Program-made: the position numbers and the translations under genes
Notes under the pieces: generated by a model
Told to the model about the DNA's origin: nothing
Databases searched by the model: none
Seen by the model: only the letters and a program-made list of their open reading frames with translations
Part shown: positions 1,936 to 60,655 of the stretch, piece after piece
Layout: each line of letters begins with the position of its first letter
Numbering within the stretch: the first letter of the stretch is position 1
Assembly (NCBI GenBank): GCA_051530055.1
Contig: CM121342.1
Span: 7,050,864 to 7,114,863, forward strand
DNA: 64,000 bases
Direction: 5' to 3'
From: Neoechinorhynchus agilis
Taxonomy: Eukaryota; Animalia; Acanthocephala

Positions 1936-2864
1936 GGTTAATATTTTTTATTTTTGTTAACTAGAAATATATATCCACGAACCATTGTCTTACCCGAAAA
2001 AGAGAGTTTACGAAAATATATTTTAATCGAGACGATTTCTATTGAAATTTTTTTGACCACAAAAAAGTGTATGAAGGTAAATCGAACGACTTAATTTAAA
2101 TTTATAATTTTTGGCGACGTAATTGTGGTAAAATACGAAGCGATTTCGTGTATCTGTAAAGTTGCACTCATGATAACGACTTTAGTATGTGGCGAGACGG
2201 TATTAAGAAACCTACTAACAAGTAGAAACAAGAAATCCATTTCCTTGGTTCGATCATGAGCTTCATCGAGTACAATATGACTATACTCGTCCAGTGATCT
2301 AGCTTGGATCAGTTTTTGAAGTAGAATTCCAGTGGTACAATAGAGTAGACGAGTAGAGTTCGAAACGGTTTTATCGAGTGAAACTTGGTATCCACAAATC
2401 TGTCCAAGTGGTTGACGGCGTTGAGCCGTGACCCACTTGGCAACACTGATGGCTGCGATTCTCCTCGGTTGAGTAACGACAATGTTACACGGTCGACTAT
2501 GTTGAACGCAGTCGTCGAGAATGTATTGAGGGATTTGGGTACTCTTCCCCGATCCGGGCTGACTGCAAATGAGTGTAACGTTGTTGCCGCTAACGGCGTT
2601 AAGAATTTCGTTTCGATGAACGTACACGGGCAGACTCTTGTTGTATTGAACATCACTAAGGTTCAACAATGGAGGAGGAGGAGCAGGATGGCGTGATGAA
2701 TCCGCTTGTACTGTCGACGGTCCCCCAATGTCGTAACCGAGGTGGCTACGGATTGTGTTAACTACTCGATCAGAAACGTTGTCGGGCATTAGATCTTAAA
2801 GAAAAAGAAGTCAATTTTTTTAGCCATTGGACCAAAATCAATCGTATACGAAAATGTCGACATG

Positions 2865-4797
2865 TGAGGCGGTACCGGGGGGGGAATGTGATTATTGGAA
2901 TTATTGTTTAGAAGTCTTCATTCGCGGTGAATGATTTCCTTTCGATTAAAAAGACGTTCTGTGGACCTCGTCGGATTACCGGGTGTAGACCTAAACAATA
3001 ATTCCAAGAAATGACGATATGTGAGGTACCGGGGGAATGTGATTATTGGAATTATTGTTTAGAAGTCTTCATTCGCGGTGAATGATTTCTTTTCGATTAA
3101 AAAGACGTTCTGTGGACCTCGTCGGATTACCGGGTGTAGACCTAAACAATAATTCCAAGAAATGACGATATGTGAGGTACCGGGGGAATGTGATTATTGG
3201 AATTATTGTTTAGAAGTCTTAATTATTGTTTAGAAGTCTTCATTCGCGGTGAATGATTTCTTTTCGATTAAAAAGAAGTTCTGTGGACCTCGTTGGATTA
3301 CCGGGCGTAGACCTAAACAATAATTCAAGAAATGACGATATGTAGGGTACCGGGGGAATGTGATTATTGGAATTATTGTTTAGAAGTCTTCATTCGCGGT
3401 GAATGATTTCTTTTCGATTAAAAAGAAGTTCTGTGGACCTCGTCGGATTACCGAATTGTAGACCTAAACAATAATTCAAGAAATGACGATATGTGAGGTA
3501 CCGGGGGAATGTGATTATTGGAATTATTGTTTAGAAGTCTTCATTCGCGGTGAATGATTTCTTTTCGATTAAAGAAGTTCTGTGGACCTCGTTGGATTAC
3601 CGGGCGTAGACCTAAACAATAATTCCAAGAAATGACGATATGTGAGTACCGGGGGAATGTGATTATTTGAATTATTGTTTAGAAGTCTTCATTCGCGGTG
3701 AATGATTTCTTTTCGATTAAAAAGACGTTCTGTGGACCTCGTTGGATTACCGGGCGTAGACCTAAACAATAATTCCAAGAAATGACGATATGTGAGGTAC
3801 CGGGGGAATGTGATTATTGGAATTATTGTTCAGAAGTCTTCATTCGCGGCGAATGATTTCCTTTCGAGTAAAAAGAAGTTCTGTGGACCTCGTTGGATTA
3901 CCGGGCGTAGACCTAAACAATAATTCCAAGAAATGACGATATGTGAGGTACCGGGGGAATGTGATTATTGGAATTATTGTTTAGAAGTCTTCATTCGCGG
4001 TGAATGATTTCTTTTCGATTAAAAAGACGTTCCGTGGACATCGTCGGATTACCGGGTGTAGACCTAAACAATAATTCCAAGAAATGACGATATGTGAGGT
4101 ACCCGGGGAATGTGATTATCGGAATTATTGTTTAGAAGTCTCCATTCGCGGTGAATGATTTCTTTTCGATTAAAAAGAAGTTCTGTGGACCTCGTTGGAT
4201 TACCGGGCGTAGACCTAAACAATAATTCCAAGAAATGACGATATGTGAGGTACCGGGGGAATGTGATTATTGGAATTATTGTTTAGAAGTCTTCATTCGC
4301 GGTGAATGATTTCTTTTCGATTAAAGAAGACGTTCTGTGGACCTCGTCGGATTACTGGGTGTAGACCTAAACAATAATTCCAAGAAATGACGATATGTGA
4401 GGTACCGGGGGAATGTGATTATTGGAATTATTGTTTAGAAGTCTTCATTCGCGGTGAATGATTTCTTTTCGATTAAAAAGTCGTTCTGTGGACCTCGTCG
4501 GATTACCGGGTGTAGACCTAAACAATAATTCCAAGAAATGACGATATGTGAGGTACCGGGGGAATGTGATTATTGGAATTATTGTTTAGAAGTCTTCATT
4601 CGCGGTGAATGATTTCTTTTCGATTAAAAAGACGTTCTGTGGACCTCGTCGGATTACCGGGTGTAGACCTAAACAATAATTCCAAGAAATGACGATATGT
4701 GAGGTACCGGGGGAATGTGATTATTGGAATTATTGTTTAGAAGTCTTCATTCGCGGTAAATGATTTCTTTTCGACTAAGGACAAAATGTGGACCTCG
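2865..4797. repeat. 151-bp satellite, about 12-13 units, with an internal 17-bp inverted repeat
   Basis: CCAAGAAATG recurs at 4531 and 4682 (period 151). Each unit contains TTGGAATTATTGTTTAG and its reverse complement CTAAACAATAATTCCAA. Confidence 0.95.
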
Positions 4798-5719
4798 AAA
4801 GGGATTCATCATCTCATTCTTTTAGTGTCTTTTTACAACAAACAAACTAATGATGAACCAGTTTCGAAACCCACAGAACATTTTTAATCGAAATAATCAT
4901 TTACCGCGGTTGTAGGCGTCTAAACTATAATTTCAATCGTATACGCAAAAGAATCGTGGCCTAAAAACGTCCGAATATTCAAATGTGCGCTTTTATTACG
5001 ATTGACACGAAAGAAAATTTTTTGTGGTCTAGTCAATTTTTCTAAAATTTCCGAGTTTCGGCGTCTTATTGTTTCGTCAGGAATCTGCACGGACGCGTAG
5101 GGATGTGAAGTTTCATGGATTCCTGCAAAAGCTAAAGACGATGAAACTCTCGAAAACAAAACGAAGAGTTCCCAATTAAAAGTAGAATTTCTCAGCCTGA
5201 GAAAAGGTATCGCTCACTGAAAACGGGCTGTGTGCTGTAGTTTTTACTTCGCATCAGAAAAGCATCCGCTTGCTATTGCCATTTGTAAAAACCTATAAAT
5301 CGAGACGAGTTTTTCCGCCATGACAAACGTCGAATGAAAATTTCGGAACCGGCTTTTCCTGGAACCAAATATTCGCTGTGCCCTGTCAACGATTCAACTT
5401 CGAATCAAGGAAATTGTGCAAAGAAGGCAACCTCAGCCATCACATTAATCAGGAGATGATCGCGGGTGCAGGATTTTAAAAAAGAATTCAAAGTAACGCA
5501 ACGAAATAATCGACCCATGACCCCCAGTTGAATAATTACGGAAAATTCCGTCCTCTCACCACTATTTTGAACACCATAACTTCGAACGGAAGAAAACCAT
5601 CGATAGAAAATCCTTCGGATTAGTCAAAGTATAATTTTGGTGAAAATACTACCGGTCCTCATCAGTGATTTAAAAATTAGTTTCACACATTAAGGATTTA
5701 AGCTCGAGTACGCGGGATC

Positions 5720-6990
5720 GTCAAACTCGAAGTTCGGGGCCAATTATCCACTCGAGCCTCCTGAGCTCCTCCCGAAGATACACTAACCCATCCTGTGCTC
5801 TCTACGATCAAAAAGATGGTGTAGCCATAGGATCGCCATTAGTCCGATCTTGGCCGACATCTACATGTGGAATTGGGAGTCCACTTTCTTGGAGCTTCAT
5901 AGTCATGAAAATCGGTGACGGCGTTATGTGGACGATGTATTCATTCTGAATGATTCAAATAACAACAGAGATTCACTAAATGCTGAACTTAACAGTCAAG
6001 GTCCACACATACAGTGGACAGTCAAAGAAGTGAACATCAACGGTGAATTCTCGTTCCTGTACGTTCTTGTCAAGCGCTCATCACAAGGCAAAGTTAGCAC
6101 CTCACTTTATCGCGAAGAGAACCTACCACGGGGACCACCACCACGCTGGTAAAGTCACAAACCGATGAAGCATAAAATCTCGGCTGTCAAGTCCTACTTC
6201 CGAAAAGCATCTCTTATCTCATCTACTCGATTTGCATGGATTAGGGAAAGGATAGTACAAGAGCTGAACAAATTAATTATAGACCGGGGAATCCGAGGAT
6301 GCAACTTTCATCCGCAAAAACACCAAAAAATCGCCTCCAGAGCCTGCATGCTTCGAAAGAGTGAACTTTATTGATGATGACACGAATCAAATGATCTACT
6401 CCATTATGAGTAAGAAGGTTGGAATTCGTCTATACAATACTAAAGGAATCGCTCTCAGAAGCACATTCAAGAGGAAGGGTAAAATTGAGCCGACTCATGA
6501 GATCTATAGAATGCACTGTGAACAGTGTGATGAAGTCTACATCGGACAAACGATGCAGGGCATTAAGAAGAGGGTCTCGCAACACAAGCAAGCTTGCATT
6601 CGAGTTGAGCATTCGTCGATAATCTCTAATCATCAAGAGACATTCAAGCATCGAGCGGATTTTGGTGGCACCAACCTTATAGAAATAGAGCAAAACCTAA
6701 AAAGACGGCTTGTTTTGGAGGCCTTACACATCGCTGCGTCAAACACAATGGAAGGAAATAAAGCTAATTTTAGCTTGAAACTTTCAGCCAGCGACGTGTT
6801 AAAAATCAATGCTAAAATCAATGGGAAAAAACGAGCGGATAATTGGTCCCTTCGAACTTCGGGTTTGGCGATCCCGCGCACTCCGAAATGAAACCCAGGT
6901 ACCGGTCATTTAAAACGAAATAATTGCTCATCCGCGTTTTGGCACCGGTTAAACACTAAAGTAGAGGATACCTAAACAAATTCGTACCAG
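5720..6990 (+). mobile_element. Penelope-like retroelement, decayed 3' part (RT, thumb, GIY-YIG endonuclease)
   Basis: QKDGVAIGSPL/SPILADIYM (frameshifted), RRYVDDVFIL, and GIY-YIG motif IYRMHCEQCDEVYIGQT...KRVSQHK...LEALHI in ORF 6361-6891. Stops and frameshifts present. Confidence 0.85.
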
Positions 6991-7175
6991 TTTGGACTTC
7001 GAGGACCCTCCGCCGCTGAGGTTGCCATAAAGTTCTGTTAGTAACCGTGAACTTTAGTAGACAAAAAATCAGCGCTGGTAAAAGTAATCCATAGAAACTT
7101 TGTCAGTTTTTTTTAATTTCGTTTATCTTCTATTTCAAAAAGTTTAACTATTTGGTAAATGTTTATTGCATAGTA

Positions 7176-8070
7176 GCATATTTTTGACTATTTCATCAAC
7201 TTGTTTTTGTATGCGAAAATTTTAGAAAACATGAGCGAAAATCAGCTCCCCTCTCGTGGTTTCTTCGAATATTAGAAAAGATTCTTGTACTCCGATGCCT
7301 CGCTTCAGAATCTAGACAGAGATTTGTGTTATGTTCTCGAAGCCTCATTAAGTTGTGATCTTACGATTATTTCTCTAACATGAATTCCAATTTTCAAATT
7401 CGTAGTAAATTTTACGATCTCAAACATCAAGCCAGTTTCGAAGTTCCCTACGGTGAGTGGGTCTATTCTATGTGTGCAAACGCCTCCAAACTGCTTTATT
7501 GTTTTATAAATTTGCAAATCGATAGGATCGCTATCGAAGTCCAGGACTACCTTTTGACCGGATTTTAAAAATTCGACACTTCTTGTCGCTGTCTTTTCTT
7601 CAAAAAATCTTCTATATTACCTTAAGCTACCTTTGAAAATTAGGTCTCAACGAGAATGCACGAATTCTTCGTGTTTTTTGAAAAGTACTTGATTTTCGAA
7701 GGTTGCTGAGGTAAGATTTAGGATTTAGGACGAAGGAAAAGTGAATGTGGTTAGATTTTTTCAAAAACCGCGAATCGTAGTCCTGAACTGATGCATAGAC
7801 GACACTGAGATGATGATGTATAAAATGATGAAGTAGGCGGGAGGAGTATGAACATGTAGACGAGGTTCACTCGTTAATGGGAGTTGTAAATTATAAATTT
7901 TGAACACCATAACTTTGAACGCTATTCGAGAACACATTCAATCTCGATCAAATGCCCCATAGATGTCAAATAGGAAAAGACAAGAAGAGTTATATTTAAA
8001 GCAATGAACAGGGTCATAAATGATCGCCACAACGTTATTTTTTTCATTAAAAGTCAAAATTATTTCACTT
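7176..8070 (+). repeat. ~895-bp direct repeat, copy A
   Basis: Near-identical to 12369-13264 by visual alignment; ORFs 7329-7517 and 12522-12710 translate identically. Confidence 0.95.
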
Positions 8071-8174: not shown

Positions 8175-8705
8175 TAAAGGCACGAAATTTATTAAAATTT
8201 ATAAGTTTTGGAAGATAATGTTCTGTGGAGCCGCGATTTTCCTCACACTGGCAGCATTCCCAAGGAATGATGTCGCACGCGGGTCCTTTTTCATCACCGT
8301 CGACCTCTTTGCTATATCTGAAACCAGCTGAAGTGCGGATTCTCCGAGGGCCATGAACGTTTCGATCCCGATAGGAACAAAATGGAAGTTCTTCAGTTCA
8401 GCGTATTTTGCCGCTTTCCGACGCTCCGCTACGGTCGCTACAGCACCGGGGCCTTTGCTGGCTAAAACAGCGAAAGATTTAATCATGGTGTCGGTGCAGG
8501 TTGCATCCCATAAGAGGCACTTCCCTCGGCTCCAAGGAAAGACTGACACACCATCCGGGCGCTTACCATCAGACCTGCACAGATTGCTCGGCTCCAAGAT
8601 GTTTTTAATGTTGATGTAGGTCAAGGCTCTACTCAGGATTGCGTTGATTTCGGCATGTCTATGCGACCGTCCGGCTGACCGAATGCACATGATAGAGCAT
8701 TTAAT
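8175..8705 (-). mobile_element. CRE-like non-LTR retrotransposon, C-terminal restriction-like endonuclease (RLE) part
   Basis: SAGRSHRHAEINAILSRAL...EPSNLCRSDGKRPDG...PWSRGKCLLWDATCTDT...AERRKAAKY...FVPIGIET: the PD-(D/E)xK RLE of early-branching non-LTR elements. Confidence 0.8.
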
Positions 8706-8709
8706 TGTT

Positions 8710-11700
8710 TGGCGTCTACTTACGAGCTACAGCGACATTCGTGTGGGAAGCAGATGGGGGCACCCAATCTCAAAGAGAAAGCTATCCGGAATGTTTCTTT
8801 GTCCAAAAGAGTCCCCAACTTTTCGGTCGGGATAGCTTCCAGCCAAGCGCCGGACCGCACCCTACCAAATCTGGAAATTTTCGTTTCGCCCCTTAGAAGC
8901 GAAAAATACCTTCGACGCGCACACTACCTCACCTCTTACCGTTACCTCTTCAACTCCCAATATCCTCTTTCCCCCCCACGAGTTCATCCCGCATGCACTG
9001 TTCCCACCCTTATGGTCCCTACACTCAATTCACCCCTAACTACAGTATCCACCCACGAATTCATTACCCCCGAACTACCCCATCGGTCAACTCCCATCCC
9101 TTCTCTCCCTGCTCAGTTTCAACCCTCTCTGTCAGTGTCCTCCCCTCATGTCCCTTCTAAACATCCCTTTCCAAAATCTTTTATTCTAACATCCGCAGCA
9201 TCCTCCCCAAACTGGATGAGCTCCATATAGTTGCCTCTTTTTGCAACGCCGACATCCTGGTAATTACGGAAACATGGCTCTCACCCCATAGCAAATTATC
9301 TGCCTTCCTTCCAAACTTTCAAGCTTTTAACCTCACAAGGGACTTCCTAAACGGTGGAGTCATATCGATCTTCATCCGCGCCTCTCTCCTTTGCCATTGC
9401 TCTCCACCCTACCTTTTCATCTCCGACTATCTTAAATGGCTACACATCCAAGTTCATCTCCCTCTCCGCAATGGTCAACGTGAGATCTCTATCACTGGCC
9501 TCTATCGCCCTCCTTCCCCAAACATCCCCAACACACTTCAACAAATAGACCACCTATTTACTGACCTACTTTCCACTTCCTCGGATCACTTCATCATATT
9601 GGGCGATTTTAACAAACTGCCGATCCCGTCCTCGCTCTCTCATCTTTCCTAACTCGTTACTTTCCCCACACGCTTCTCCTTCCGCGTTGATAAAATTTCC
9701 CGAACATCAGGCAATACTCGTGCACTACCAAACTCCCCCCGATCGCCTCGTCTGACCATTGTTTTATCCCTCTCTCCCCCTCATCACCTCAAAAACGTTC
9801 CTTTTCCGACCCCTACGTTGTCTGGGATAAGCGTGATCATCATACCCAATCCTTTGCTGCATGTGTCAATTCTCTTTTCACGCAAAACCACTCTACCATC
9901 TTTGGCCCGACCCCTCGATTGCAATGGGCTCTTTGTTAATCTAATAGAATCCGCGGTGAAGGCCCCCCTTTCCTCGCAAAACAATACGAATCTAGAATCG
10001 CGACCCTCCAAGATTCTCGCCTTTTCTAAAAACCCTCCGAATGCAGGTCACCAAAGCTTTCCGGTATGGTAATCCTGCTTACCCCTCCCTCTACTCCACA
10101 CTGACAAAACGCATCCGTATAGCCCGCAAAGTATTCCTCTCATCTCGTCTCTCGACCGTTCCCAATCGAAACTGGTGGCGTTAAATAAAAAATATCGCTG
10201 GTCTTGGTAGATCCACCCCTTTCGCATCTCTCCCCAAATCTGATCTCCTCTCAATCTTCAATACTATGAATAAAAACCTCTGTCCTCCCTAAACCTCCTC
10301 TCCGTTGTCCCAACCTCCCTTCTCACTTTTGGACCCGCCCATTCATACATGTCCTTCCTTAGTTTCCCCTCTTGAAATCCTAGAAATTCTTAAACGCCTG
10401 CCCTGCCATTCTTCCCCTAATTCGACTATCCCAAATTGGGCCATTCGTTTCATCATCCCTGAACTTATCGATCCTCTAACGCGCATAACGAACCTTAGCT
10501 TTCTACTGGGCTCTTTCCCGTCCTGTCTTAAGGAAGTCCGTGTCGCCCCTACCCAATAGCGATAAGCCGATTTCCTCCACATCCCTTCGTCCCATCTCTA
10601 TCTTCTCACCTTTCTCTAAAATCTTAGAATTTTTTTTTAAAAACCGCTTACTTCCCTTCTTCCTCAAAAACATCTCCCCTTCCCAATTCGCTTTCCGTCC
10701 CAATTACTCTTGTTCTGATGCCCTCCTCTGCATCTACGATACGCTTGTGCACAGCTTAGATTCCAGTCCAGAATCAATCGTCCGTCTCGTGCAACTGGAT
10801 ATTTCCAGGGCGTTACCATGTGCTTCCTTTGGCCTCCCTACTTGGCAACTCGCTTGGATTTCCTCTTTCCTCTCCAACCGCAAACAATATATTAAATGTG
10901 GAATTTCTTGCTCCTCTTCTCTACCCATATTTAAAGGGGTCCCCCAAGGCGCCGTACTTTCCCCTCTCATCTTTGACATTTTTCCAAATGACCTTCATCC
11001 CCTCACTCCCCCTACCAAATATTTTCTTTATGCCGGTGACCTCACAGTCATTACCATCGCATCTCTCCCTCTCCACTACCATAGACGAGCACAACTATCT
11101 CATTTCCTCGCTCTCCACCCTAAACCTCTCCTTAAATTTATCTAAATCTTTTGAGCTTGTCCCCCACATTTCCAAACGCAACCTTATCCCCGCGCCTCCC
11201 TCTCCCCATCCAACGCTCCTCTTCTCTTCGAATACTGGGCGTGATTTTACAAGAAAACCTTTAATGGGATGCCCACATTTCATTTACCCTCTCAAAAGCA
11301 AACCCTCGTCTTTACCTTCTCAAACTCCTCCGGCGTCTCGGCAATATGTGGGACTTGACTCCCTCCCCTCGACGCCCACCTCCACTCCATTTTCTCCAAA
11401 AACGCCATCCGTCCACTTCAACCCCCTCCACAATTTTCTTCCCTCTTCTCTGCTCTTCCCTAGTAAACACTCGGAACCCCAACCTTTTTCATCCTCCCAT
11501 CGCTCGTACCTCCCTCAACCAAAAATCTTTCTTTCCTCAAGCCCAATCTTTCCTTAACAACCGGAGAACAAGGAAAGACTCCTAATCTGCCATTCTCCTG
11601 TAAAACTCCAAAGACAAACCCCACCTTCCTTGCCTCAACATCCGACATCCAGACACCTTCAGCAAAGATAGATGCTTGCAAGTGTATGGATCGTTCTTTT

Positions 11701-11726
11701 CTTAAATTAATAGAACGTGTTTATAT
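8710..11726 (+). mobile_element. CR1/L2-group LINE, near full-length ORF2, decayed
   Basis: APE endonuclease SNIRSILPKLDEL...DILVITETWL (~9186-9280), GGV, LGDFN. RT motifs LRPIS..SPFSKILE, QFAFRPNYS, QLDISRA, GVPQGAVLSPLIF, YAGDL (degenerate YADD). Many frameshifts and stops; strong C/T skew on the + strand. Confidence 0.85.
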
Positions 11727-12368
11727 GGCCTTCTGCACGATCCGTAAGTCCAACGATGGCTGCTTTTGGCACGTCTGGGGTATTGTGGCTTGTCCTACTT
11801 TAGAGGTCCATAATACTCCGGATAGATCTTAAGGGCGTTCTCCCGACCAGCCGAAATCAAAGAAAGGCCGGCAATGCGACTTCCTTCATGAGTCTGAGTC
11901 CTGAACCTCCGTAGTTTGAGGGTAACGTCACGTGTTTAAACGAGGAATGGTCGAAATCGATATTGACGATTTGGCTGAGCTTATTCCGAAGAAGATCATC
12001 CAGACTCGATAGATCATCCTTGCACGCGAAGGCGGGTGCAGATCTCAGCCTGTGCAAAACCATTGGGATGTAGAGGCAGTTTCTAATCAAAAAACGGCCT
12101 CGTGAGATTTTAGATTTGAACATCTTTTACATAACAAACTCAGGGCGGCAACGATATTCGCTACGTCCTTCGGAACATTCTCTTTGAAAACGCATGAACC
12201 CAGCAGACTGATGTCGCAAATATTGATTCGTTTAATGCCTGGAGCGACATTTTTGAATTGCTCGTGCTACTGCGAGCTTTCTGTTTCGTCCATGTTCAGG
12301 AGTAGCAATTCACACTTTGAGCTGTTAAACTCGAGGCTTATCTTCGAGCTGATCTCGATGATGCCGTT
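11727..12368 (-). mobile_element. CRE-like non-LTR retrotransposon, RT C-terminal/thumb part (5'-truncated)
   Basis: LEFNSSKCE...LLGS, FLIRNCLYIP...LRSAP, VTLPSNYGGSGLR...ALPAFL. Same orientation as 8175-8705 and upstream of it in element order. Confidence 0.75.
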
Positions 12369-13264
12369 GCATATTTTTGACTATTTCATCAACTTGTTTT
12401 TGTATGCGAAAATTGTAGTAAACATGAGCGAAAATCAGCTCCCCTCTCGTGGTTTCTTCGAATATTAGAAAAGATTCTTGTACTCCGATGCCTCGCTTCA
12501 GAATCTAGGCAGAGATTTGTGTTATGTTCTCGAAGCCTCATTAAGTTGTGATCTTACGATTATTTCTCTAACATGAATTCCAATTTTCAAATTCGTAGTA
12601 AATTTTACGATCTCAAACATCAAGCCAGTTTCGAAGTTCCCTACGGTGAGTGGGTCTATTCTATGTGTGCAAACACCTCCAAACTGCTTTATTGTTTTAT
12701 AAATTTGCAAATCGATAGAATCGCTATCGAAGTCCAGGACTACCTTTTGACCGGATTTTAAAAATTCGACACTTCTTGTCGCTGTCTTTTCTTCAAAAAA
12801 TCTTCTATATTACCTTAAGCTACCTTTGAAAATTAGGTCTCAACGAGAATGCACGAATTCTTCGTGTTTTTTGAAAAGTACTTGATTGTCGAAGGTGGCT
12901 GAGGTAAGATTTAGGATTTAGGACGAAGGAAAAGTGAATGTGGTTAGATTTTTTCAAAAACCGCGAATCGTAGTCCTGAACTGATGCATAGGCGACACTG
13001 AGATGATGATGTATAAAATGATGAAGTAGGCGGGAGGAGTATGAACATGTAGACGAGGCCTACTCGTTACTGGGAGTTATAATTTATAAATTTTGAACAC
13101 CATAACTTTGGAGCGCTATTCGAGAACACATTCAATCTCGATCAAATGCCCCATAGATGTCAAATAGGAAAAGACAAGAAGAGTTATATTTAAAGCAATG
13201 AACAGTGTCATAAATGATCGCCACAACGTTATTTTTTTCATTAAAAGTCAAAATTATTGCACTT
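12369..13264 (+). repeat. ~895-bp direct repeat, copy A'
   Basis: Near-identical to 7176-8070; begins immediately at the CRE 5' truncation. Confidence 0.95.
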
Positions 13265-13864
13265 TATTGTGAGAAAGTCTTTAAAAAGATGCGAGTTTTA
13301 GATTAAAAATGCATTGAACGTCTAAAACGGTAGGTATATATCGTGGGGTCTTGGCATACCCTAACGTCTCAAAACCATTTAATGTGCGTTACCCTCTACT
13401 AAACGTTGAAGAGCACAATGATGTGAAATTGAGATGTGGAAGCCGAAATATATATGCCGAAATTGTTTGTTTTTGACGCTTCCGCATGCGGGCTATTTTT
13501 TAATGCCAAAGATCGGACCTCCGCATGTCTTGTTATAGAATCTTTTTAATTGCAGTGGAACGTCAATTATTTGAAAGACAACTTTATGCGGATCTGAATG
13601 CTGTCCCAATCAACTACTGTTTTTTGTTTATGTTCAGGCGAAATAAAGTAAAATCATATATTTTTATTAGTATTTCGTTCTCTACGTGGGTCTTCGTCAG
13701 AATAAGCAATTCTGGAGAAGTCCAACGTAGAAACACCTTTACAATTATTTAACTTCTTAATGAGATATATCATTGTCCTCGGGGTAAATTAGATTGTACG
13801 TTAGCGAATCCTGTCCCATTCTCATTTATTTGAGAAATGGTTCACAAGGTTTCAACTTGCAAGC

Positions 13865-14030
13865 AATAGCGACTGAAGAGGCAAGGAAAACCTTGTGAAA
13901 TATCTCTCAAATAGATGAGTATTTATAACACCGGGGACAGAATTCGTCAAGACACCAACTCACACATTTAAAACTTACAAGCAATAGCGACTGAAGAGGC
14001 AAGGAAAACCTTGTGAAATATTTCGCAATT
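13865..14030 (+). ncRNA. Tandem dimer of minimal type I hammerhead ribozymes (118-nt period)
   Basis: CTGAAGA-G-GCAAGG-AAAA-CCTTGT-GAAA-TA-TC at 13873-13904 and the same core ending TA-TT at 13991-14022. Stem I GCGA/TCGC is intact in copy 2. Confidence 0.8.
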
Positions 14031-15135
14031 AATAAACGAGTATCGATTACACCGGGGACAGGATTCGCCAACGTACAATATTTAACTTCTTTTGCTCGTA
14101 GATAATCAGTGACATTGCAGCGCAGAAACGAAGGCGTGAAATGGTGTTATTTTCCCAATCGCAAAAGTCAACCTTGCGAATTTTCAAGGCCTCGGCCTCC
14201 TTCTCAAGCATTGTTTGTTACTTGTTACAATTTGCCATTGAGAATACACATCTACCCGAAGGAACAATTGGATAGAATTACAATTTTCCGACAAAAAAGG
14301 CTAAAATTATGTAATTTTCCCCCTATTTTTATGTTTAAAGCCTCTTCAGCGATCGATTTAGTCTAAATCATCGGTTTGTCCGATATGCATCGGATTTGAC
14401 TGTATTATTACGTTGTCCTACAATTTTCCTAGATAAAAAATCATTTCGCCGCATTTGTTGATGGAAAAAGTCTCAACGCGTTTCTAGTTCACTTGGAACA
14501 AAATGAAACGTCATGGAATTCAGTTGAACAGTTTATATTGGAAAGATCCCGGTAACCAAGAGAATGAAACCGTCTTCTTGAGCGTCCAGTATGGGCGCGA
14601 GGATCGGCTTCGGTAACTATTTATCAGACAATACGTTCCCTATTCTTTTGAACCCTTTCCCCGCTGTTGTGGGTCGTCGGGTCTATGAGTTCTGAGATGA
14701 TGCCGCGAAGAGTCCAGTTTTGGATTGATTGAAAATAACATGAGTGAACGCGAGGCGGGAGAAGTATTTGGGTACGATGGAGGCAGAAACAAGCGAGTAA
14801 ATTGTTGTAAATTAATTAAAATCTTGATTTATGAAGGTTCATTTAAGATTAGGTTGAAGAACCTGCTCAGTGAAGTAGAAAGGCGAAAGGTGCATCCGAA
14901 AATTGAAATCGAATAAAAAACAATATATCGCTGTTCACACTAGGGACGCACAATGTGGAGTGTAACTTTTGTTCGCTTTTTTAAAATCATTTTTGACTAT
15001 TTCTGAATAAGTTTCAATTTGCACTATAGGCACCTGATATCTCATCAACAAGTTTATACAAAAACAATTGCCAATATCGTAGTTTAGATTAAGACGAACT
15101 CACATATTTAAAAACTTACAAACAAGTGAGGGAGA

Positions 15136-15172
15136 GTCCCCGAAGAAGCCGTAAAGCGGCGAATATTCGGAC
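15136..15172 (+). ncRNA. Degenerate minimal hammerhead ribozyme
   Basis: GTCC-CCGAAGA-A-GCCG-TAAAG-CGGC-GAATATTC-GGAC: stems I and II perfect, core mutated. Upstream AACTCACA.ATTTAAAA.CTTACAA is shared with the 118-nt monomer. Confidence 0.55.
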
Positions 15173-15829
15173 AAAATAAAAAACATCGTACTCGGGAACG
15201 TTTTGGGGAAAATCTATCTGTAGTTTACATTGATAACTCCACTAAGGATGGTCCCAAGCCCGGCTGAAAAAAGAGGAGGGTTGGCGTCAGGAAGGGCATC
15301 CGGCTGTAAAATTTTAGCTAAATTTTGAACCCAATGACATACAAATTATCACCAAATCGATGTTATATAAGGACCCGCGACCTCTCGAAAGAGAGAAAGG
15401 CGTCAGTGAGTAGTTTATATTGATTTTTACATCAATTTCCCGTGGTAGCACTCAAAATGTCTACTCCTGAACTCTACGTGGGTCGATTCACTGGCAACAA
15501 ACAATTAAAAGAGCACGCCCTCGGTGCCGGAAGGTGCAGCGTCCGCGGCCAAAAAGAAGAAGGCGACAAAATATATCAAATTGAGATCCCGGGGATTCGG
15601 CCTTTAAACTATGCGACGAATTGGAGCGCCGGATGATGGAAGCGATCACAGGAGTAGTATTTTAATCAGAGGATAAACATGATTGTATAGCGAGGGAAGG
15701 TCGTGATCGATAATGTGACAAAATAAGGTCTCTTTGAAAAAAAATTTACTTTAAAATGCCACAATTCTCTAGAAATCGATTCTTTATTTTTACGCATGAG
15801 TTCTTTATCCCGTTTAGTGTCTAGATTTT

Positions 15830-16935
15830 AATACACCTTCAAATTTTACTTTTTTTGTTAAAAATGAAAGATTTTAGTCAATTCATTAAAAATTTGATAG
15901 AAATGCCAAAATTTTCCAAGAAATCGATTCCCTATTTTTTCTTGTTTGAATTCTTTACCTCTTTTGAGTCTAGATTTCAAAGCACCTTCAGAATGGAGTT
16001 TTTTGTTCAAAAATTAAAGACTATATTCAATTCAATCGGTAGAAATCGCTTCAGTATAATTTTAATTTTAAGTTTCTTTATCTCGTTTAGTCTTTAGGTT
16101 TCAAAACACCTTCAAAATGAAGTGTTTCTTTTCGTTGGGAAATGAACGACTTAAGTCAATTCATTTAAGAATTTGATTGAAAATGGTAAAAATTCTATAA
16201 GAAATCGATTTCCTATAATTTTAATTCTAAGTTTCTTTACCCCGTATAGTCTTTAGATTTCAAAGCACCTTCAAAGCGAAGTTTTTTATTCAAAAATTAA
16301 AGACTGTATTCAATTCAATCGGTAGAAATCGCTTCAGTCTTAATCTTAATTCTAAGTTTCTTTATCTCGTATAGTCTTTAATATTTCAAAGCACCTTCAA
16401 AGCGAAGTTTTTTATTCAAAAATAAAAGCCTTTATTCAATTCAATCGGTAGAAATCGCTTCGGTATAATTTTAAATCTAAGTTTCTTTATCTCGTTTAGT
16501 CTTTAGGTTTCAAAACACCTTCCAAATGAAGTGTTTCTTTTCGTTGGGAAATGAACGACTTAAGTCAATTCATTTAAGAATTTGATTGAAAATGGTAAAA
16601 ATTCTATAGGAAATCGATTTCCTATAATTTTAATTCTAAGTTTCTTTACCCCGTATAGTCTTTAGATTTCAAAGCACCTTCAAAGCGAAGTTTTTTATTC
16701 AAAAATAAAAGCCTATATTTAATTCCGTAGAAATCGATTCAGTCTAAATTTTAATTCTAAGTTTCTTTATTTCGTATAGTCTTTAAGATTTCAAAGCACC
16801 TTCAAAGCGGAGTTTTTTATTGAAAAATTAAAGACTGTATTCAATTCAATCGGTAGAAATCGATTCAGTCTAAATCTTAATTCTAAGTTTCTTTATTTCG
16901 TATAGTCTTTAAGATTTCAAAGCCCCTTCAAAATG
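15830..16935. repeat. AT-rich satellite of ~123-bp and ~160-bp units with a ~410-bp higher-order period
   Basis: CAAAGCACC/CAAAACACC anchors at ~15980, 16101, 16261, 16387, 16511, 16670, 16792, 16916. Confidence 0.85.
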
Positions 16936-17493
16936 GAGCTCTTTTTTCCGACATAATCTCTCGCTCGATATTGTTTACGCCATCATCATGAACACCTTGG
17001 GCAACACAAAAAGACGAACGTAACAAGAGGTCCAAAGCAACTTCTCCTCATCGATGGTGGAGGTTATATAAGCGCAACATGATGACTTACTCCGAATATC
17101 CAGGAGCCTGGAACAACATTCACGATTACTTGGTTAGAGGCGCTCATTCACGAATGCGCTGCTGGTGAACACTCACGTTCGTTGTTGCTATCTCCATTCT
17201 TGCTCCAGTGAAGACGACGTATTATCTAACGTGCGTAAGGAGTGATGAACACCCTTTCTTATATTTTTCCATTCACACTCGTCTGCTTTCGACGAATCCG
17301 AGCGCATTTTCTATGTCGGTCCATCGTGGTTAAAAAGTCTTCATCCGGTTAATGGATTTAACTTTAAAAACCCATTCTAGACTATCTTTTAAGAACACAC
17401 CCTTTATTGATCGTACACTCACTCAAGCGAAACACTCATCGGAGCGAAACAAACCAATTTGGCGTTAGTAGGTGTTGATTGTTCATTAAATTC

Positions 17494-23429: not shown

Positions 23430-23830
23430 GATATTACTGGTTAGAAATCATTTTATTGTTCTGAAATATTTCGTGAGGAAACCTCACTTTATCAATAATC
23501 TAAAAAGGGTGATGAAAGCTTCGCTACTTCCAAGGTTTCGGGACCGCGTGCCTGCTCGTAAACCTTGCACTTTATCGTGTGTTCCATTGATTTTAACTAC
23601 GTCGCTAGCAGGTAGTTTTACGCTGAAAATCGCCTAATTGCCTTCCATTGTATTGGCCGCAGAGACGTGGACAGCCTCCAGAACAAGGCGCCGTCCAAGA
23701 TTTGACTCCTTCTCTATAAATTCGGTGCCTTCATAATCTATGCGATGTTGCATAGTTTCCTGGTGGTTTAAAATCGCAGATGAGCGATATACGTGTGTGA
23801 TTTCGTTAGATGTTAAGAACAGGGAGAGGT
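23430..23830 (-). mobile_element. Penelope-like 3' fragment, same family as 5720-6990, with degenerate terminal hammerhead
   Basis: HQETMQHRIDY..T..IEKE.NL.RRLVLEA.H..AANTMEGN aligns to ORF 6361-6891. TTGATAA-A-GTGAGG-TTT-CCTCAC-GAAA-TA-TT lies at 23465-23495. Confidence 0.8.
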
Positions 23831-24864
23831 GGGATGGTGATTAGGTGATGAGGGTGATATAATAAAAGTTTAGAATGAGAGGAGAGGTTTGAGGTCGTTT
23901 AGGAAAATATTCAAAAGATGTGGTGACAGAACAGCTCCTTGATGTAAGCCTTTGGTGAGGGATCGGCTGATCATTGAAGAGGCGACCCGGCGGAGAGTCG
24001 GGAGAGTTACTTAAAGAAGTCACCATAACATTGAAGCGATTAAACAACTTCAATTTGCTCATCATTTAGACATTACATAAAAATATTTTGCGACTTTCAT
24101 ATACGGTTCAAACAACTCAACCATTTACGAACCATCCCTTGACCCGGACGCAATAGCCATTAAATTTACCATATCTCGATTCATAATTTGATAAAGGATG
24201 AATAACGCTTTCCAGGTTTAAATAGTTTTCTTCAAGAAACTTGATTTATTACCAACCCGCGATCTTTGAAACCTTTATTTGCACAACGCCAATAGACGAA
24301 TATTTAAAATCGATTAAAACACGTTAGAATGTCTGAGCCCGAATTTAATGATCAGCGTTCCGTCTCAATACCATTTGAAAATTTTTTATCGAGTGTGAAG
24401 TGCTCATCGCAATTTCATGGATGTTTTCCGAAACGTGACATTTAATGGCTGACAGAAAAGGCCATATCCATAATAACGTTAGTCTTTGATTAAGAAGATG
24501 ATTTTTTACAAAACAATTTTAAAGTTTTCTTTTGAATTATTCGCATTTTTTAAACACGAATTTCAAATTCCATTTAAAAGGAATGATGATGTGAGTGCTT
24601 AGAGTGGAAATATCATCCATCCTTGCAAAACTTTGTTCTTGCAAGGCATTGCGAATCGATCTGAATAAGATGTCAGACGATAGATACCTCCTTGCATTTC
24701 GAATGTAGCAGCCGCTGTCATCCGAGAATCGGAGGCGAACGACTGGCACGCTGATGTTCCTCGGCTTGATAGGCGATTATCCTCATAAATGAGAACACCA
24801 GGAGTTATGACCGAGGTTAGTTTAAGATATTGCAGAAATTGATGGAGCTTTGCGACGGAAAAAG

Positions 24865-27800
24865 AGTTTAAGAGCTTTGCGTAACGATGACACGAAAGAA
24901 GGCTTTATATTACGTCACGAATACGTGATAATGGAGAATTTTAGTGAACAAAGTGAAAGGAAAAACAGTTTAAGAGCTTTGTGTAACGATGACACGAAAG
25001 AAGGACGGACGTTACGTCACGAATACGTGATAATGGAGAATTTTTGTGAAAAAGTGCAAAGAAAACACAGTTTAAGAGCGTCGTGGAATGATGACACGAC
25101 AGAAGGCTTTATATTACGTCACGAATACGTGATAAGGGAGAATTTTAGTGAACAAAGTGAAAGGAAACACAGATTAAGAGCGTTGTGTAACGATGACACG
25201 AAAGAAAGACTATCGTTACGTCACGAATACGTGATAAGGGAGAATTTTAGTGAACAAAGTGAAAGGAAACACAGATTAAGAGCTTTGTGGAATGATGACA
25301 CGAAAGAAAGACTGACGTTACGTCACGAATGCGTGATAATGGAGAATTTTAGTGAACAACGTGAAAGGAAACACAGTCCAAGAGCGTTGCGTAACGATGA
25401 CACGAAAGAAAGACTATCGTTACGTCACGAATACGTGATAATGGAGAATTTTAGTGAACAAAGTGAAAGGAAACACAGTCTAAGAGCTTTGTGGAATGAT
25501 GACACGAAAGAAAGACTATCGTTACTTCACGAATACGTGATAATGGAGAATTTTAGTGAACAAAGTGAAAGGAAACACAGATTAAGAGCGTTGTGTAACG
25601 ATGACACGACAGAAGGCTTTATATTACGTCACGAATACGTGATAATGGAGATTTTTAGTGAACAAAGTGAAAGGTAACGCAGTTTAAGAGCTTTGTGGAA
25701 TGATGACACGAAAGAAAGACTGTCGTTACGTCACGAATACGTGATAATGGAGATTTTTAGTGAACAAAGTGAAAGGAAACACAGTTTAAGAGCTTTGTGG
25801 AATGATGACACGAAAGAAAGACTGTCGTTACGTCACGAATACGTGATAATGGAGAATTTTAGTGAACAAAGTGAAAGGAAACACAGTCTAAGAGCGTTGT
25901 GTAACGATGACACGAAAGAAAGACTGTCGTTACGTCACGAATACGTGATAATGGAGATTTTTAGTGAACAAAGTGAAAGGAAACACAGTTTAAGAGCTTT
26001 GTGGAATGATGACACGAAAGAAGGCTTTATATTACGTCACGAATACGTGATAATGGAGATTTTTAGTGAACAAAGTGAAAGGAAACACAGTTTAAGAGCG
26101 TTGTGGAATGATGACACGAAAGAAAGACTGACGTTACGTCACGAATACGTGATAATGGAGATTTTTAGTGAACAAAGTGAAAGGTAACGCAGTTTAAGAG
26201 CTTTGTGGAATGATGACACGAAAGAAAGACTGTCGTTACGTCACGAATACGTGATAATGGAGATTTTTAGTGAACAAAGTGAAAGGAAACACAGTTTAAG
26301 AGCTTTGTGGAATGATGACACGAAAGAAAGACTGTCGTTACGTCACGAATACGTGATAATGGAGATTTTTAGTGAACAAAGTGAAAGGAAACACAGTTCA
26401 AGAGCTTTGTGGAATGATGACACGAAAGAAAGACTGTCGCTACGTCACGAATACGTGATAATGGAGATTTAGTGAACAAAGTGAAAGGAAACAGTCTAAG
26501 AGCGTTGTAACGATGACACGAAAGAAAGACTATCGTTACGTCACGAATACGTGATAATGGAGAATTTTAGTGAACAAAGTGAAAGGAAACACAGTTTAAG
26601 AGCTTTGTGGAATGATGACACGAAAGAAAGACTGTCGTTACGTCACGAATACGTGATAATGGAGATTTTTAGTGAACAAAGTGAAAGGTAACGCAGTTTA
26701 AGAGCTTTGTGGAATGATGACACGAAAGAAAGACTGTCGTTACGTCACGAATACGTGATAATGGAGATTTTTAGTGAACAAAGTGAAAGGAAACACAGTT
26801 TAAGAGCTTTGTGGAATGATGACACGAAAGAAAGCTGTAGCTTACGTCACGAATACGTGATAATGGAGATTTTTAGTGAACAAAGTGAAAGGAAACACAG
26901 TTTAAGAGCTTTGTGGAATGATGACACGAAAGAAAGACTGTCGTTACGTCACGAATACGTGATAATGGAGATTTTTAGTGAACAAAGTGAAACGAAACAC
27001 AGTTCAAGAGCTTTGTGGAATGATGACACGAAAGAAAGACTGTCGCTACGTCACGAATACGTGATAATGGAGAATTTTAGTGAACAAAGTGAAAGGAAAC
27101 ACAGTCTAAGAGCGTTGTGTAATGATGACACGAAAGAAAGACTATCGTTACGTCACGAATACGTGATAATGGAGAATTTTAGTGAACAAAGTGAAAGGAA
27201 ACACAGTCTAAGAGCGTTGTGGAATGATGACACGAAAGAAAGACTGTCGTTACGTCACGAATACGTGATAATGGAGAATTTTAGTGAACAAAGTGAAAGG
27301 AAACACAGTTTAAGAGCTTTGTGGAATGATGACACGAAAGAAAGACTTATGTTACGTCACGAATACGTGATAATGGAGATTTTTAGTGAACAAAGTGAAA
27401 GGAAACACAGTTTAAGAGCTTTGTGGAATGATGACACGAAAGAAAGACTGACGTTACGTCACGAATGCGTGATAATGGAGATTTTTAGTGAACAAAGTGA
27501 AAGGTAACGCAGTTTAAGAGCGTTGCGTAACGATGACACGAAAGAAAGACTGACGTTACGTCACGAATGCGATATAATGGAGATTTTTAGTGAACAAAGT
27601 GAAAGGTAACGCAGTTTAAGAGCTTTGTGGAATGATGACACGAAAGAAAGACTGTCGTTACGTCACGAATACGTGATAATGGAGATTTTTAGTGAACAAA
27701 GTGAAAGGAAACACAGTTTAAGAGCTTTGTGGAATGATGACACGAAAGAAAGACTGTCGCTACGTCACGAATACGTGATAATGGAGAATTTTAGTGAACA

Positions 27801-28996
27801 AAGTGAAAGGAAACAGTCTAAGAGCGTTGTGTAACGATGACACGAAAGAAAGACTATCGTTACGTCACGAATACGTGATAATGGAGAATTTTAGTGAACA
27901 AAGTGAAAGGAAACACAGTCTAAGAGCTTTGTGGAATGATGACACGAAAGAAAGACTATCGTTACGTCACGAATACGTGATAATGGAGAATTTTAGTGAA
28001 CAAAGTGAAAGGAAACACAGTTTAAGAGCGTTGTGTAACGATGACACGAAAGAAGGCTTTATATTACGTCACGAATACGTGATAATGGAGATTTTTAGTG
28101 AACAAAGTGAAAGGAAACACAGTTTAAGAGCGTTGTGGAATGATGACACGAAAGAAAGACTGACGTTACGTCACGAATGCGTGATAATGGAGATTTTTAG
28201 TGAACAAAGTGAAAGGAAACACAGTTTAAGAGCTTTGTGGAATGATGACACGAAAGAAAGACTGTCGTTACGTCACGAATACGTGATAATGGAGATTTTT
28301 AGTGAACAAAGTGAAAGGAAACACAGTTCAAGAGCTTTGTGGAATGATGACACGAAAGAAAGACTGTCGTTACGTCACGAATACGTGATAATGGAGATTT
28401 TTAGTGAACAAAGTGAAAGGTAACACAGTTTAAGAGCTTTGTGGAATGATGACACGAAAGAAAGACTGTCGTTACGTCACGAATACGTGATAATGGAGAA
28501 TTTTAGTGAACAAAGTGAAAGGAAACACAGTTTAAGAGCTTTGTGGAATGATGACACGAAAGAAAGACTGTCGTTACGTCACGAATACGTGATAAGGGAT
28601 TTTTAGTGAACAAAGTGAAAGGAAACACAGTTCAAGAGCTTTGTGGAATGATGACACGAAAGAAAGACTGTCGTACGTCACGAATCGTGATAAGGTTTTG
28701 TGGTGAACCAGTTAAGAGCGTTGTGTAACGATGACACGAAAGAAAGACTATCGTTACGTCACGAATACGTGATAATGGAGAATTTTAGTGAACAAAGTGA
28801 AAGGAAACACAGTTTAAGAGCTTTGTGGAATGATGACACGAAAGAAAGACTGTCGCTACGTCACGAATACGTGATAATGGAGAATTTTAGTGAACAAAGT
28901 GAAAGGAAACATAGTCAAAGAGCGTTGTGTAACGATGACACGAAAGAAAGACTGACGTTACGTCACGAATGCCGGATAATGGAGAATTTGAGTGAA
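24865..28996. repeat. 102-bp satellite, about 40 units
   Basis: Unit AGTTTAAGAGCTTTGTGGAATGATGACACGAAAGAAAGACTGTCGTTACGTCACGAATACGTGATAATGGAGATTTTTAGTGAACAAAGTGAAAGGAAACAC. Its length is a multiple of 3, which produces the 34-aa repeat ORFs. Confidence 0.97.
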
Positions 28997-57222: not shown

Positions 57223-57458
57223 ACTCAAAGTTTATAACTTTGGTGAAAATAATCCGCTAATCATAACCTATAATTGATTTATTGGGGAAATATTTCGAAG
57301 GAGGAGGTAAACTCGCCTCATCAGTCATTGTTTTTTCACACTTGAAAAAACTTGCAAACAATGATTGATGAGGCGAGGTTACCTCCTCTGCGAAATATCT
57401 TAAATCAAAATCAAATATAGCTTATGACCGGGAGTATTTTCACCGAAATTATACTTTT
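57223..57458. mobile_element. Head-to-head inverted pair of Penelope-like terminal fragments, each with a hammerhead-like core
   Basis: Minus arm CTGATGAG...CGAAATATT (57324->57289); plus arm TTGATGAG...GCGAAATATC (57365-57399). The ~100-nt arms are diverged inverted copies. Confidence 0.6.
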
Positions 57459-59977: not shown

Positions 59978-60655
59978 TTATAAACACGTTCTATTAATTT
60001 AAGAAAAGAACGATCCATACACTTGCAAGCATCTATCTTTGCTGAAGGTGTCTGGATGTCGGATGTTGAGGCAAGGAAGGTGGGGTTTGTCTTTGGAGTT
60101 TTACAGGAGAATGGCAGATTAGGAGTCTTTCCTTGTTCTCCGGTTGTTAAGGAAAGATTGGGCTTGAGGAAAGAAAGATTTTTGGTTGAGGGAGGTACGA
60201 GCGATGGGAGGATGAAAAAGGTTGGGGTTCCGAGTGTTTACTAGGGACGAGTATTTAGAGATGAGGGAAGAAAATTGTGGAGGGGGTTGATGTGGACGGA
60301 TGGCGTTTTTGGAGAAAATGGAGTGGAGGTGGGCGTCGAGGGGAGGGAGTGAAATCCCGAATATTCTAGCTGCTCTCTTGTGGAAGGTTTCGAGGGAATG
60401 GAGAGCATTGACGGAGAGGAAAGGGGGGGAAATCGTATGTAAGGATAGGAAGGATGGCATAAAGATAAAAGTGGACAAGGTGTTAAGGGGAAACGCCGAG
60501 ACGCCGGAGGAGTTTGAGAAGGTAAAGACGAGGGTTTGCTTTAGAGAGTGTAAATGAAATGTGGGCATCCCATTTAAGGTTTTCTTGGAAAGTCAGGCCC
60601 AGTCTAAAATCAGGCCCAGTCCGTAAAATCAGGCCCAGTTAAAAATCAGGCTGCT
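59978..60655 (-). mobile_element. 5'-truncated copy of the LINE family at 8710-11726 (3' end)
   Basis: Near-identical reverse complement of ~11235-11727; ORF 60023-60244 equals ORF 11460-11681. Confidence 0.9.

Follow-up and report, generated by a model that had tools for sequence, protein, structure and literature searches.

The block at positions 13759-14079 is best explained, with a probability of roughly 0.75, as the insertion relic of a short hammerhead family that derives from Penelope-type elements (PLEs), carries no open reading frame (ORF) and is flanked here by target-site duplications. Most likely, this insertion records one old event of a high-copy PLE-derived family and is now an inert relic. 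Within 345 bp of the window, by which the whole 64,000-nucleotide stretch under analysis is meant throughout, the locus brings together a compact Penelope insertion signature, namely a target-site duplication, a one-sided tail, an inverted and truncated copy, a partial tandem and two intact hammerheads. Since this signature is complete and comes without a gene, the element is assigned to the non-autonomous PLE derivatives. The hammerheads themselves, as judged from their sequence, are minimal type-I ribozymes of the PLE kind (termed “min-HHRs”), which are able to act only as dimers.

The block is a single composite insertion of 321 bp situated between target-site duplications of 12 bp (Table 1). 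The duplicated 12-mer, ATTTAACTTCTT, is found at 13747 and 14080 and nowhere else in the 64 kb, and such a match was given by 1 of 20,000 shuffles of the flanks. This duplication starts with ATT, and the target is AT-rich. The hexamer TACAAT found directly before the left duplication is the same as the last 6 nt of the element. On the left side of the insertion, the inverted copy starts within the 3' strand of helix II, has its GAAAUAU mutated to GAACCAU, lacks 11 nt of the tail and ends in AACGTACAAT. The one-sided tail continues for 28-34 nt past the AACGTACAAT end of this inverted arm, and nothing of the kind lies beyond 14079. By alignment and inspection, the tail extension (CTAATTTACCCCGAGGACAATGATATAT) bears a similarity to the inter-unit spacer that is too weak to decide homology. 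The first-pass annotation, made from the letters alone, had noticed an inverted copy of the monomer 3' end at 13795-13852; the complementarity is indeed present at 13793-13852, and continues for 28 nt more to 13765.

The two direct units are 87% identical over 100 nt (blastn). Formation of the tandem by the joining of hammerhead-cut ends was considered and rejected, as 63 nt separate the unit boundary at 13959/13960 from the cut site downstream of it. Among the ORFs listed (of at least 50 amino acids up to position 13800, and of at least 80 amino acids up to 20000), none starts or ends within 13759-14079, and for this reason too the block is regarded as a non-autonomous PLE derivative. The earlier proposal of a very small non-autonomous element is supported by the lack of an ORF and by the Penelope-type insertion architecture; the proposal of an isolated 118-nt repeat is not retained, because the unit sits in a 321-bp composite. 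Tandem Repeats Finder does not report the 118-nt repeat, owing to the small number of copies and their diverged tails. No tRNA genes were found in 12000-17000, and thus no tRNA head adjoins the element.

Table 1. Features of the composite insertion, its two hammerheads and the other hammerhead-like loci of the window (window coordinates)
Feature	Position	Strand	Description
Left target-site duplication	13747..13758	.	ATTTAACTTCTT
One-sided tail extending the inverted arm past its canonical 3' end	13759..13792	-	13765-13792 family-wide; 13759-13764 extra junction sequence
Inverted 5'-truncated unit copy	13793..13852	-	Inverted repeats I1-I3, alignment of the three pieces
Unit 1 (107 nt)	13853..13959	+	20-nt spacer remnant, hammerhead 1, 55-nt tail ending in ACACCAAC; direct repeats D4, D7
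Unit 2 (120 nt)	13960..14079	+	31-nt spacer TCACACATTTAAAACTTACAAGCAATAGCGA, hammerhead 2, 57-nt tail ending in AACGTACAAT
Right target-site duplication	14080..14091	.	ATTTAACTTCTT
Hammerhead 1	13869..13908	+	Stem I GCGA/UCUC (3/4 pairs), full core, predicted cut 13904/13905
Hammerhead 2	13987..14026	+	Stem I GCGA/UCGC (4 bp), full core, predicted cut 14022/14023
Copy 1 core	C3 13873, U4, G5, A6, A7, G8, A9 13879	+	Motif numbering
Copy 1 extra G	13880	+	Unpaired, between A9 and 10.1
Copy 1 helix II	13881-13886/13891-13896	+	GCAAGG/CCUUGU, loop AAAA
Copy 1 G12-A14	13897-13899	+	
Copy 1 A15.1-U15.2-A16.2-U16.1	13900-13903	+	Followed by C17 at 13904
Copy 2 core	Copy 1 positions +118	+	AUAU 14018-14021; U17 14022
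Hammerhead-like locus	14207	-	UUGAGAA-G-GAGGCC..GGCCUU-GAAAAUU-C; relaxed scan
Degenerate hammerhead relic	15141	+	
Hammerhead-like locus	23495	-	UUGAUAA-A-GUGAGG..CCUCAC-GAAAUAU-U; relaxed scan
Hammerhead-like locus	57324	-	Found by the simple pattern; partner of 57365 (+)
Hammerhead-like locus	57365	+	Relaxed scan; head-to-head pair with 57324 (-)

The 64-kb window contains the 31-nt string CTGAAGAGGCAAGGAAAACCTTGTGAAATAT exactly twice, both times on the forward strand (13873-13903 and 13991-14021), and none of 100 shuffles contains a match. The spacing of 118 nt that had been claimed for the two motif copies is thereby confirmed. Both copies are composed of CUGAAGA, a single unpaired G, a helix II of 6 bp, GAAA and AUAU, followed by H17, which is C in copy 1, U in copy 2 and never G; the catalytic boxes match in full, and in type-I order, in each. 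The first-pass annotation had described a complete core with a one-base insertion after A9, a stem I (GCGA/TCGC) that is fully paired in copy 2 and 3/4 paired in copy 1, and a stem III reduced to the self-complementary ATAT with no loop. All of these features are borne out, with every core position assigned in both copies and AUAU found at 13900-13903 and 14018-14021. Its assignment of the motifs to minimal type I hammerheads of the dimer-only kind likewise agrees with the structural traits of PLE min-HHRs, all of which are present except for the G10.1-C11.1 pair. At this place both copies have a wobble (G13881·U13896 in copy 1) instead of the conserved pair, and no variant at 13896 is seen among the best 40 of the 68 family variants from the DNA contigs. 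The unpaired nucleotide between A9 and 10.1 is G13880 in one copy and G13998 in the other, and an offset of 1 is needed for the best helix II register in all five motifs that the relaxed scan described below finds in the window. The loop of helix III is absent and 15.2-16.2 is palindromic, such that pairing is available only between two copies, and cutting would accordingly be possible only between two paired copies.

The Rfam hammerhead models (Hammerhead_1, _3, _II, HH9 and HH10) return no match at the gathering threshold in the window, and none at E<=10 in the 501 bases of 13700-14200. The Rfam matches actually returned, to MIR7533 (due to the hairpin) and to two snoRNA models, were dismissed as chance. 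The Rfam hammerhead models expect a helix III hairpin, which is a plausible reason for the missing match. Searching JGI metagenome contigs for the exact hammerhead pattern likewise yielded 0 matches. Within the window, the simple pattern CTGANGA-N8-30-GAAATAT is expected by chance 0.07 times and is seen three times, while a relaxed descriptor scan of both strands recovers the two motifs together with three more of like build (Table 1). Across five loci that are unrelated in sequence, the strands of helix II are different yet remain complementary (GCAAGG/CCUUGU, GUGAGG/CCUCAC, GAGGCC/GGCCUU and GCCG/CGGC), and at 14207 and 23495, both on the reverse strand, U3-A8 stands in place of C3-G8, which is a published covariant of the core. 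The presence of complementary but different helices, along with this covariant, at unrelated loci provides independent support for a genuine fold in this genome.

The PLE min-HHRs are characterised by a long helix II, a short helix I, an unpaired nucleotide between A9 and 10.1, a palindromic 15.2-16.2, the lack of loop 3 and activity only as dimers. They comprise many sequence families per genome, include the U3-A8 covariant, occur as dual opposite-strand motifs 100-700 bp apart, have a highly conserved G10.1-C11.1 pair and display low activity in vitro (Cervera and De la Peña 2014; PMC4209133). The motifs described here share with this class the type-I CUGANGA/GAAA boxes, the unpaired nucleotide, a helix II of 6 bp (6-8 bp in the class), a helix I of 4 bp (4-5 bp in the class, with copy 1 only 3/4 paired), the missing loop 3, the palindrome, the tandem and opposite-strand occurrence, the multiplicity of sequence families in one genome and, in neighbouring loci, U3-A8. 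They differ from it in the G·U at 10.1-11.1, and in the setting of the motif, which is a 118-nt unit devoid of ORFs where the class has the pLTR of a PLE with an ORF.

A similar comparison can be drawn for the insertion as a whole. PLE insertions are heavily 5'-truncated partial tandems, often with an inverted and 5'-truncated copy on their 5' side and a tail of 30-40 bp at one end (Craig et al. 2021; PMC8557442). This tail has been traced to two neighbouring internal sites, 85-92 nt past the hammerhead cut, at which the reverse transcriptase (RT) starts; targets are AT-rich and carry ATT (Frangieh et al. 2024; PMC11167929). The locus displays all four structural hallmarks, with its direct units arranged as a partial tandem, a 5'-truncated copy inverted beside them, a one-sided tail of 28-34 nt and a duplicated target site, and the PLE insertion signature is complete; it also shares the AT-rich target, which begins with ATT. 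At this locus the two termini, about 28 nt apart, are found 57 and 85 nt past the cut, as against the distance of 85-92 nt in the anole PLE. Whereas a PLE carries a single ORF for a telomerase-like RT and a GIY-YIG endonuclease (EN), no RT/EN ORF is found here, the insertion is only 321 bp in length and the tail is 28-34 nt.

The stretch is represented in five public runs from the same organism, one of DNA and four of RNA, all of them stored as assembler contigs, and the DNA run and three of the RNA runs were compared over 12500-15500 (3,001 letters). Over the element, the summed DNA word depth reaches 20,000-81,000, whereas the unique flanks have approximately 115-450 and single-copy contigs approximately 125. 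These depths are sums over assembler DNA contigs and not copy counts, but the excess over single-copy sequence is so large that hundreds of copies of the family are suggested. Positions 13765 and 14079 are both termini of the family, as 20 DNA contigs reach the former and 10 the latter before splitting, in each case, into flanks that are mutually unlike. The depth at 13786 is 56,834 compared with approximately 125 for single-copy DNA, and 13765-13792 thus belongs to the family sequence. In other copies the inverted arm is joined to the direct unit at different positions, including 13854/13957, 13854/13970, 13857/13970 and 13816/14032. Two contigs from the RNA runs, 6-8% divergent from the locus, span a tail, a spacer and the next hammerhead, which indicates that the tandem arrangement is not private to this locus.

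The hammerhead is better conserved than the tails, both among the variants of the assembler contigs (rare ones of which are dropped by the assembler) and within the locus itself. Among the best 40 of the 68 family variants, none falls within 13819-13903 or 13948-14036, and they cluster instead in the tails. Comparison of units 1 and 2 gives 0 differences in the 43 positions of 13861-13903, and 15 in the 56 positions of 13904-13959 with an additional 3-nt indel (Fisher p ~1e-4). Position 13904 is T in 27 of 27 other DNA contigs, from which it follows that H17 of the family is U and that C17 is private to copy 1. The three tails of the locus, those of the inverted arm, unit 1 and unit 2, are all different when aligned. 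The three pieces are accordingly taken to come from units that had already diverged while keeping the hammerhead block.

Trans-mobilisation by a PLE, and any self-cleavage, can be envisaged as follows. The unit of approximately 118 nt consists of the spacer, the PLE-type minimal hammerhead and a 57-nt tail that closes at the 3' terminus of the family. A multimeric transcript of such units would be copied in trans by the RT/GIY-YIG protein of a PLE, which would nick the AT-rich target TACAATT/ATTTAACTTCTT and begin reverse transcription at either of two internal sites situated about 28 nt apart. The outcome would be a partial tandem, an inverted and 5'-truncated copy on the 5' side, a tail at one end and a target-site duplication of 12 bp, and the empty site prior to insertion would be expected to read ...TACAATTATTTAACTTCTTTTGCTCG... 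Cutting of the transcript would take place only if two copies were to pair AUAU/AUAU and exchange their stem I strands, which is a thermodynamically disfavoured form.

The protein responsible would presumably be supplied by an intact PLE elsewhere. The window holds the relic of a PLE gene at about 5400-6891 (+), with a stretch resembling RT motif 4 near 5790 and RYVDDVF near 5925. The GIY-YIG segment of this relic, in an ORF at 6361-6891, matches Pfam with an E value of 7.6e-4 and 20.2 bits, under the cut-off of 22.6. This gene is 5'-truncated and frameshifted, with its motifs in different frames and interrupted by stop codons, and it therefore cannot be the mobiliser. In a search of the window, the sequence 3' of this relic neither resembled the element nor contained a clean hammerhead. 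A second RT lies in an RVT_1 ORF (10540-11145, E 1.3e-17), whose motifs, by inspection, are of LINE type. Both RT genes of the window were accordingly rejected as the mobiliser, the one as broken and the other as LINE-type, and the earlier suggestion of mobilisation by a resident Penelope RT falls with them, the only PLE ORF of the window being decayed. An autonomous PLE with the same order of spacer, hammerhead and tail was not found in the window.

Although the architecture can be accounted for by an inert relic, the same sequence could in principle belong to an active retrozyme, in which the double hammerhead cuts after 13904 and 14022 and the 118-nt RNA is circularised to serve as a rolling-circle template for the RT of a PLE. 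In agreement with this proposal, both cores are intact and identical, and the two units share an unchanged hammerhead along with 12 nt upstream of it, against a difference of 27% in their tails. The tandem order is seen again in the diverged contigs, a rolling-circle mode of copying circles has been suggested for PLEs (PMC4209133), and published consensus lengths of retrozymes extend down to 51 bp (bioRxiv 10.64898/2026.07.22.740005). Contigs of the family are also present in the RNA-library assemblies at a summed depth of 45-700, compared with 0-17 on the flanks, in assembler contigs that carry no strand or end information; the ratio of RNA to DNA depth is nevertheless lower for the repeat than for the unique flank. 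The locus has just two units, and units copied from one circle would be identical at insertion, yet all three tails differ. Furthermore, the folding predictions are unfavourable. Hammerhead 2 taken locally has a minimum-energy fold made of exactly stem I and stem II (pair probabilities of 0.82-0.87 and 0.93-0.99, respectively), with helix III open. In the tandem transcript (13853-14079), a nested pairing scheme for the double hammerhead is possible, but with an ensemble probability of only about 1%; its free energy is -23.6 kcal/mol with the pairs enforced against a minimum of -38.0 kcal/mol. When the locus is transcribed in full (-103 kcal/mol), the 3' half of hammerhead 1 is predicted to be taken up in pairing with the inverted arm and thereby sequestered. 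The 118-nt monomer folds no better than its shuffles (-13.1 kcal/mol versus -13.6 ± 2.8; z +0.17), has no rod-like structure and as a circle reaches -8.5 kcal/mol. Added to these are the G·U at 10.1-11.1 and the mismatch in stem I of copy 1. Published min-HHRs, moreover, cut weakly or need the PLE protein (PMC4209133, PMC11167929), and for the anole PLE no RNA ends were found at the hammerhead cut site, cleavage being dispensable for insertion in vitro (PMC11167929). Given the poor predicted folds, the low relative RNA depth and the weakness of the published relatives, self-cleavage and the formation of circles at this locus are, on balance, unlikely. The release of a 118-nt monomer or circular RNA, as initially put forward, thus finds no support, and an active retrozyme is a doubtful account of the locus.

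It might also be supposed that no separate family exists, and that the block is simply the 3'-most part of an ordinary autonomous PLE, its 118-nt period having arisen at integration, when the RT reached the 5' end of one short RNA and switched to the start site on a second. Most PLE insertions have lost much of their 5' part and min-HHRs in genomes are mainly solo (PMC4209133, PMC8557442), the positions of the head-to-head junctions differ between copies, and a relic of a PLE RT/EN gene lies 7 kb away, all of which would suit this explanation. It is rendered improbable by the diverged contigs of other copies, in which tail, spacer and hammerhead are contiguous in the same way, by the join between units 1 and 2, which is seamless and not at the hammerhead cut site, and by the lack of coding sequence after the tail in any unit. 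Least probable of all, and very unlikely, is a chance resemblance, that is, a generic repeat that happens to hold the CTGANGA and GAAA boxes. The missing Rfam match could be cited in its favour, and the two copies are one duplicated sequence rather than independent occurrences. Such a repeat would, however, have to produce a pattern expected only 0.07 times per window and to display the secondary traits of published PLE min-HHRs (the 10.1-11.1 pair being G·U) inside an insertion of PLE-specific architecture, while unrelated loci of the window keep the fold through compensatory changes in helix II and U3-A8.

As the relic of a non-autonomous PLE family, the locus can be set beside the retrozymes. 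The characterised metazoan retrozymes have canonical hammerheads, monomers of approximately 170-400 nt and abundant circles (Cervera and de la Peña 2020; PMC7229834), and the non-LTR retrozymes of vertebrates, whose consensus sequences measure 51-972 bp, have been concluded to derive from PLE pLTRs and to be non-autonomous (Li, Clavereau and Pollet 2026; bioRxiv 10.64898/2026.07.22.740005). Like the metazoan non-LTR retrozymes, which are known as monomers, dimers and multimers, the family is made of non-coding, AT-rich, head-to-tail units that each contain a type-I hammerhead, with a target-site duplication of more than 4 bp, an origin from PLE termini and a high copy number. Its unit of 118 nt is shorter than the ~170-400 nt of the characterised circRNA-forming retrozymes, though inside the consensus range of 51-972 bp. 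It further differs from the characterised retrozymes in its minimal hammerhead without canonical loop-loop contacts, in a monomer that is unstructured where their circles are structured, and in the two units at the locus. Published work already covers PLE min-HHRs, the ways in which they are arranged in tandem or inverted, and non-autonomous retrozymes of PLE origin with consensus lengths of 51-972 bp. The novelty of the locus therefore appears limited, and it stands out only by a very short unit and by having both cores intact.

What the relic does imply is that an ORF-less unit of about 118 nt sufficed for mobilisation. With a mobilised unit of only this size, the cis-signals for the Penelope RT would be narrowed to the hammerhead and the 57-85 nt downstream of it, a region that agrees with the in vitro mapping for the anole element. 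Only cutting and circularisation of the 118-nt RNA, were they to occur, would call for a change of concept. It is quite unlikely that the 118-nt unit is instead a complete and still active minimal parasite of PLEs, equipped with a dimer-dependent hammerhead and two internal RT start sites and propagated as a 118-nt circle by rolling-circle copying. Were it so, no ribozyme-bearing circRNA characterised so far would be as small as this circle, and the invariant spacer motif (ACTTRCAARCAAT) together with the hammerhead would define the cis-requirements for PLE mobilisation.

Beyond the element, a SINE-like repeat is located at 15245-15320, for which a string of the repeat has no full-text match in the literature. 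The host genes of the window are those of an animal, and include a ryanodine receptor, Nup98-96 and a DEAH helicase.

The focal insertion, an ORF-less Penelope-derived element with two minimal hammerhead motifs, is directly adjoined by a second family of minimal hammerheads. The motif of this neighbour (UUGAGAA-G-GAGGCC GA GGCCUU-GAAAAUU-C) has the U3-A8 core covariant along with an AAUU palindrome, and its summed DNA depth of 82,786, which is word depth summed over DNA-run assembler contigs and not a copy count, exceeds that of the focal insertion. Other copies of the family carry conserved sequence beyond 14174 that is absent from the window copy.

A short motif, ACTT(G/A)CAA(G/A)CAAT or ACAAACAATG, recurs immediately 5' of stem I in hammerhead families whose sequences show no relationship otherwise. 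This shared spacer motif could be a helix I extension, a promoter or a protein-binding site. In the head-to-head pair, which belongs to another family, the upstream motif AAACAATGA is one also present in the spacer of the focal insertion; the plus copy of the pair, UUGAUGAG, has a U3-G8 core, and helix II is decayed in its minus copy, CUGAUGAG. The solo hammerhead has a U3-A8 core and a stem I of one pair only.

Features of the window, with coordinates as window positions
Feature	Position	Strand	Remarks
Second minimal-hammerhead family	14165-14293	-	directly adjoins focal insertion
Spacers with the shared motif	13853-13872, 13971-13990, 15110-15125, 57347-57364, 14208-14225 (-)		upstream of hammerheads
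Head-to-head minimal hammerhead pair, another family	57278-57408	both
Solo minimal hammerhead	23453-23513	-	UUGAUAA-A-GUGAGG UUU CCUCAC-GAAAUAU-U
Degenerate hammerhead relic, then high-copy repeat	15094-15430		CCGAAGA..GAAUAU
Tandem array	24857-28996		period about 102 bp across 4.1 kb
Tandem array	2852-4797		period about 150 bp across 1.9 kb
Tandem array	15740-16956		compound repeat, 126/283/409 bp
Decayed, 5'-truncated Penelope-like ORF	about 5400-6891	+	RT motifs and GIY-YIG segment
899-bp direct repeat	7173-8070 and 12366-13264		97.9% identical
387-bp segment, two copies	11343-11725 and 59979-60365 (-)		96.9% identical, opposite orientation

The degenerate relic is preceded by the same spacer as that of the focal insertion, AACTCACATATTTAAAAACTTACAAACAA, and followed by a high-copy repeat containing GGTCCCAAGCCCGG...GAGGAGGGTTGGCGTCAGGAAGGGCATCCGGCTGTAAAA, which occurs in RNA libraries, where the contigs carrying it reach 1,287 nt. 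A literature search for this string gave no match. The string may resemble a teleost repeat, which, if true, would be notable, as the animal carrying it is a fish parasite. None of the three tandem arrays contained a hammerhead by the relaxed motif scan used.

The RT motifs of the Penelope-like ORF (…GSPL… and RYVDDVF) and its GIY-YIG segment are split among three frames, and the ORF is interrupted by stop codons. The 899-bp repeats enclose 4.3 kb of GC-rich sequence (0.47) with a strong C skew. A LINE-type RT ORF lies within this interval on the plus strand (10540-11145), as does, on the minus strand (8199-8690), another ORF bearing a restriction-like-endonuclease-type motif. The two 387-bp segments are probably copies of the LINE family present at 10.5-11.7 kb.
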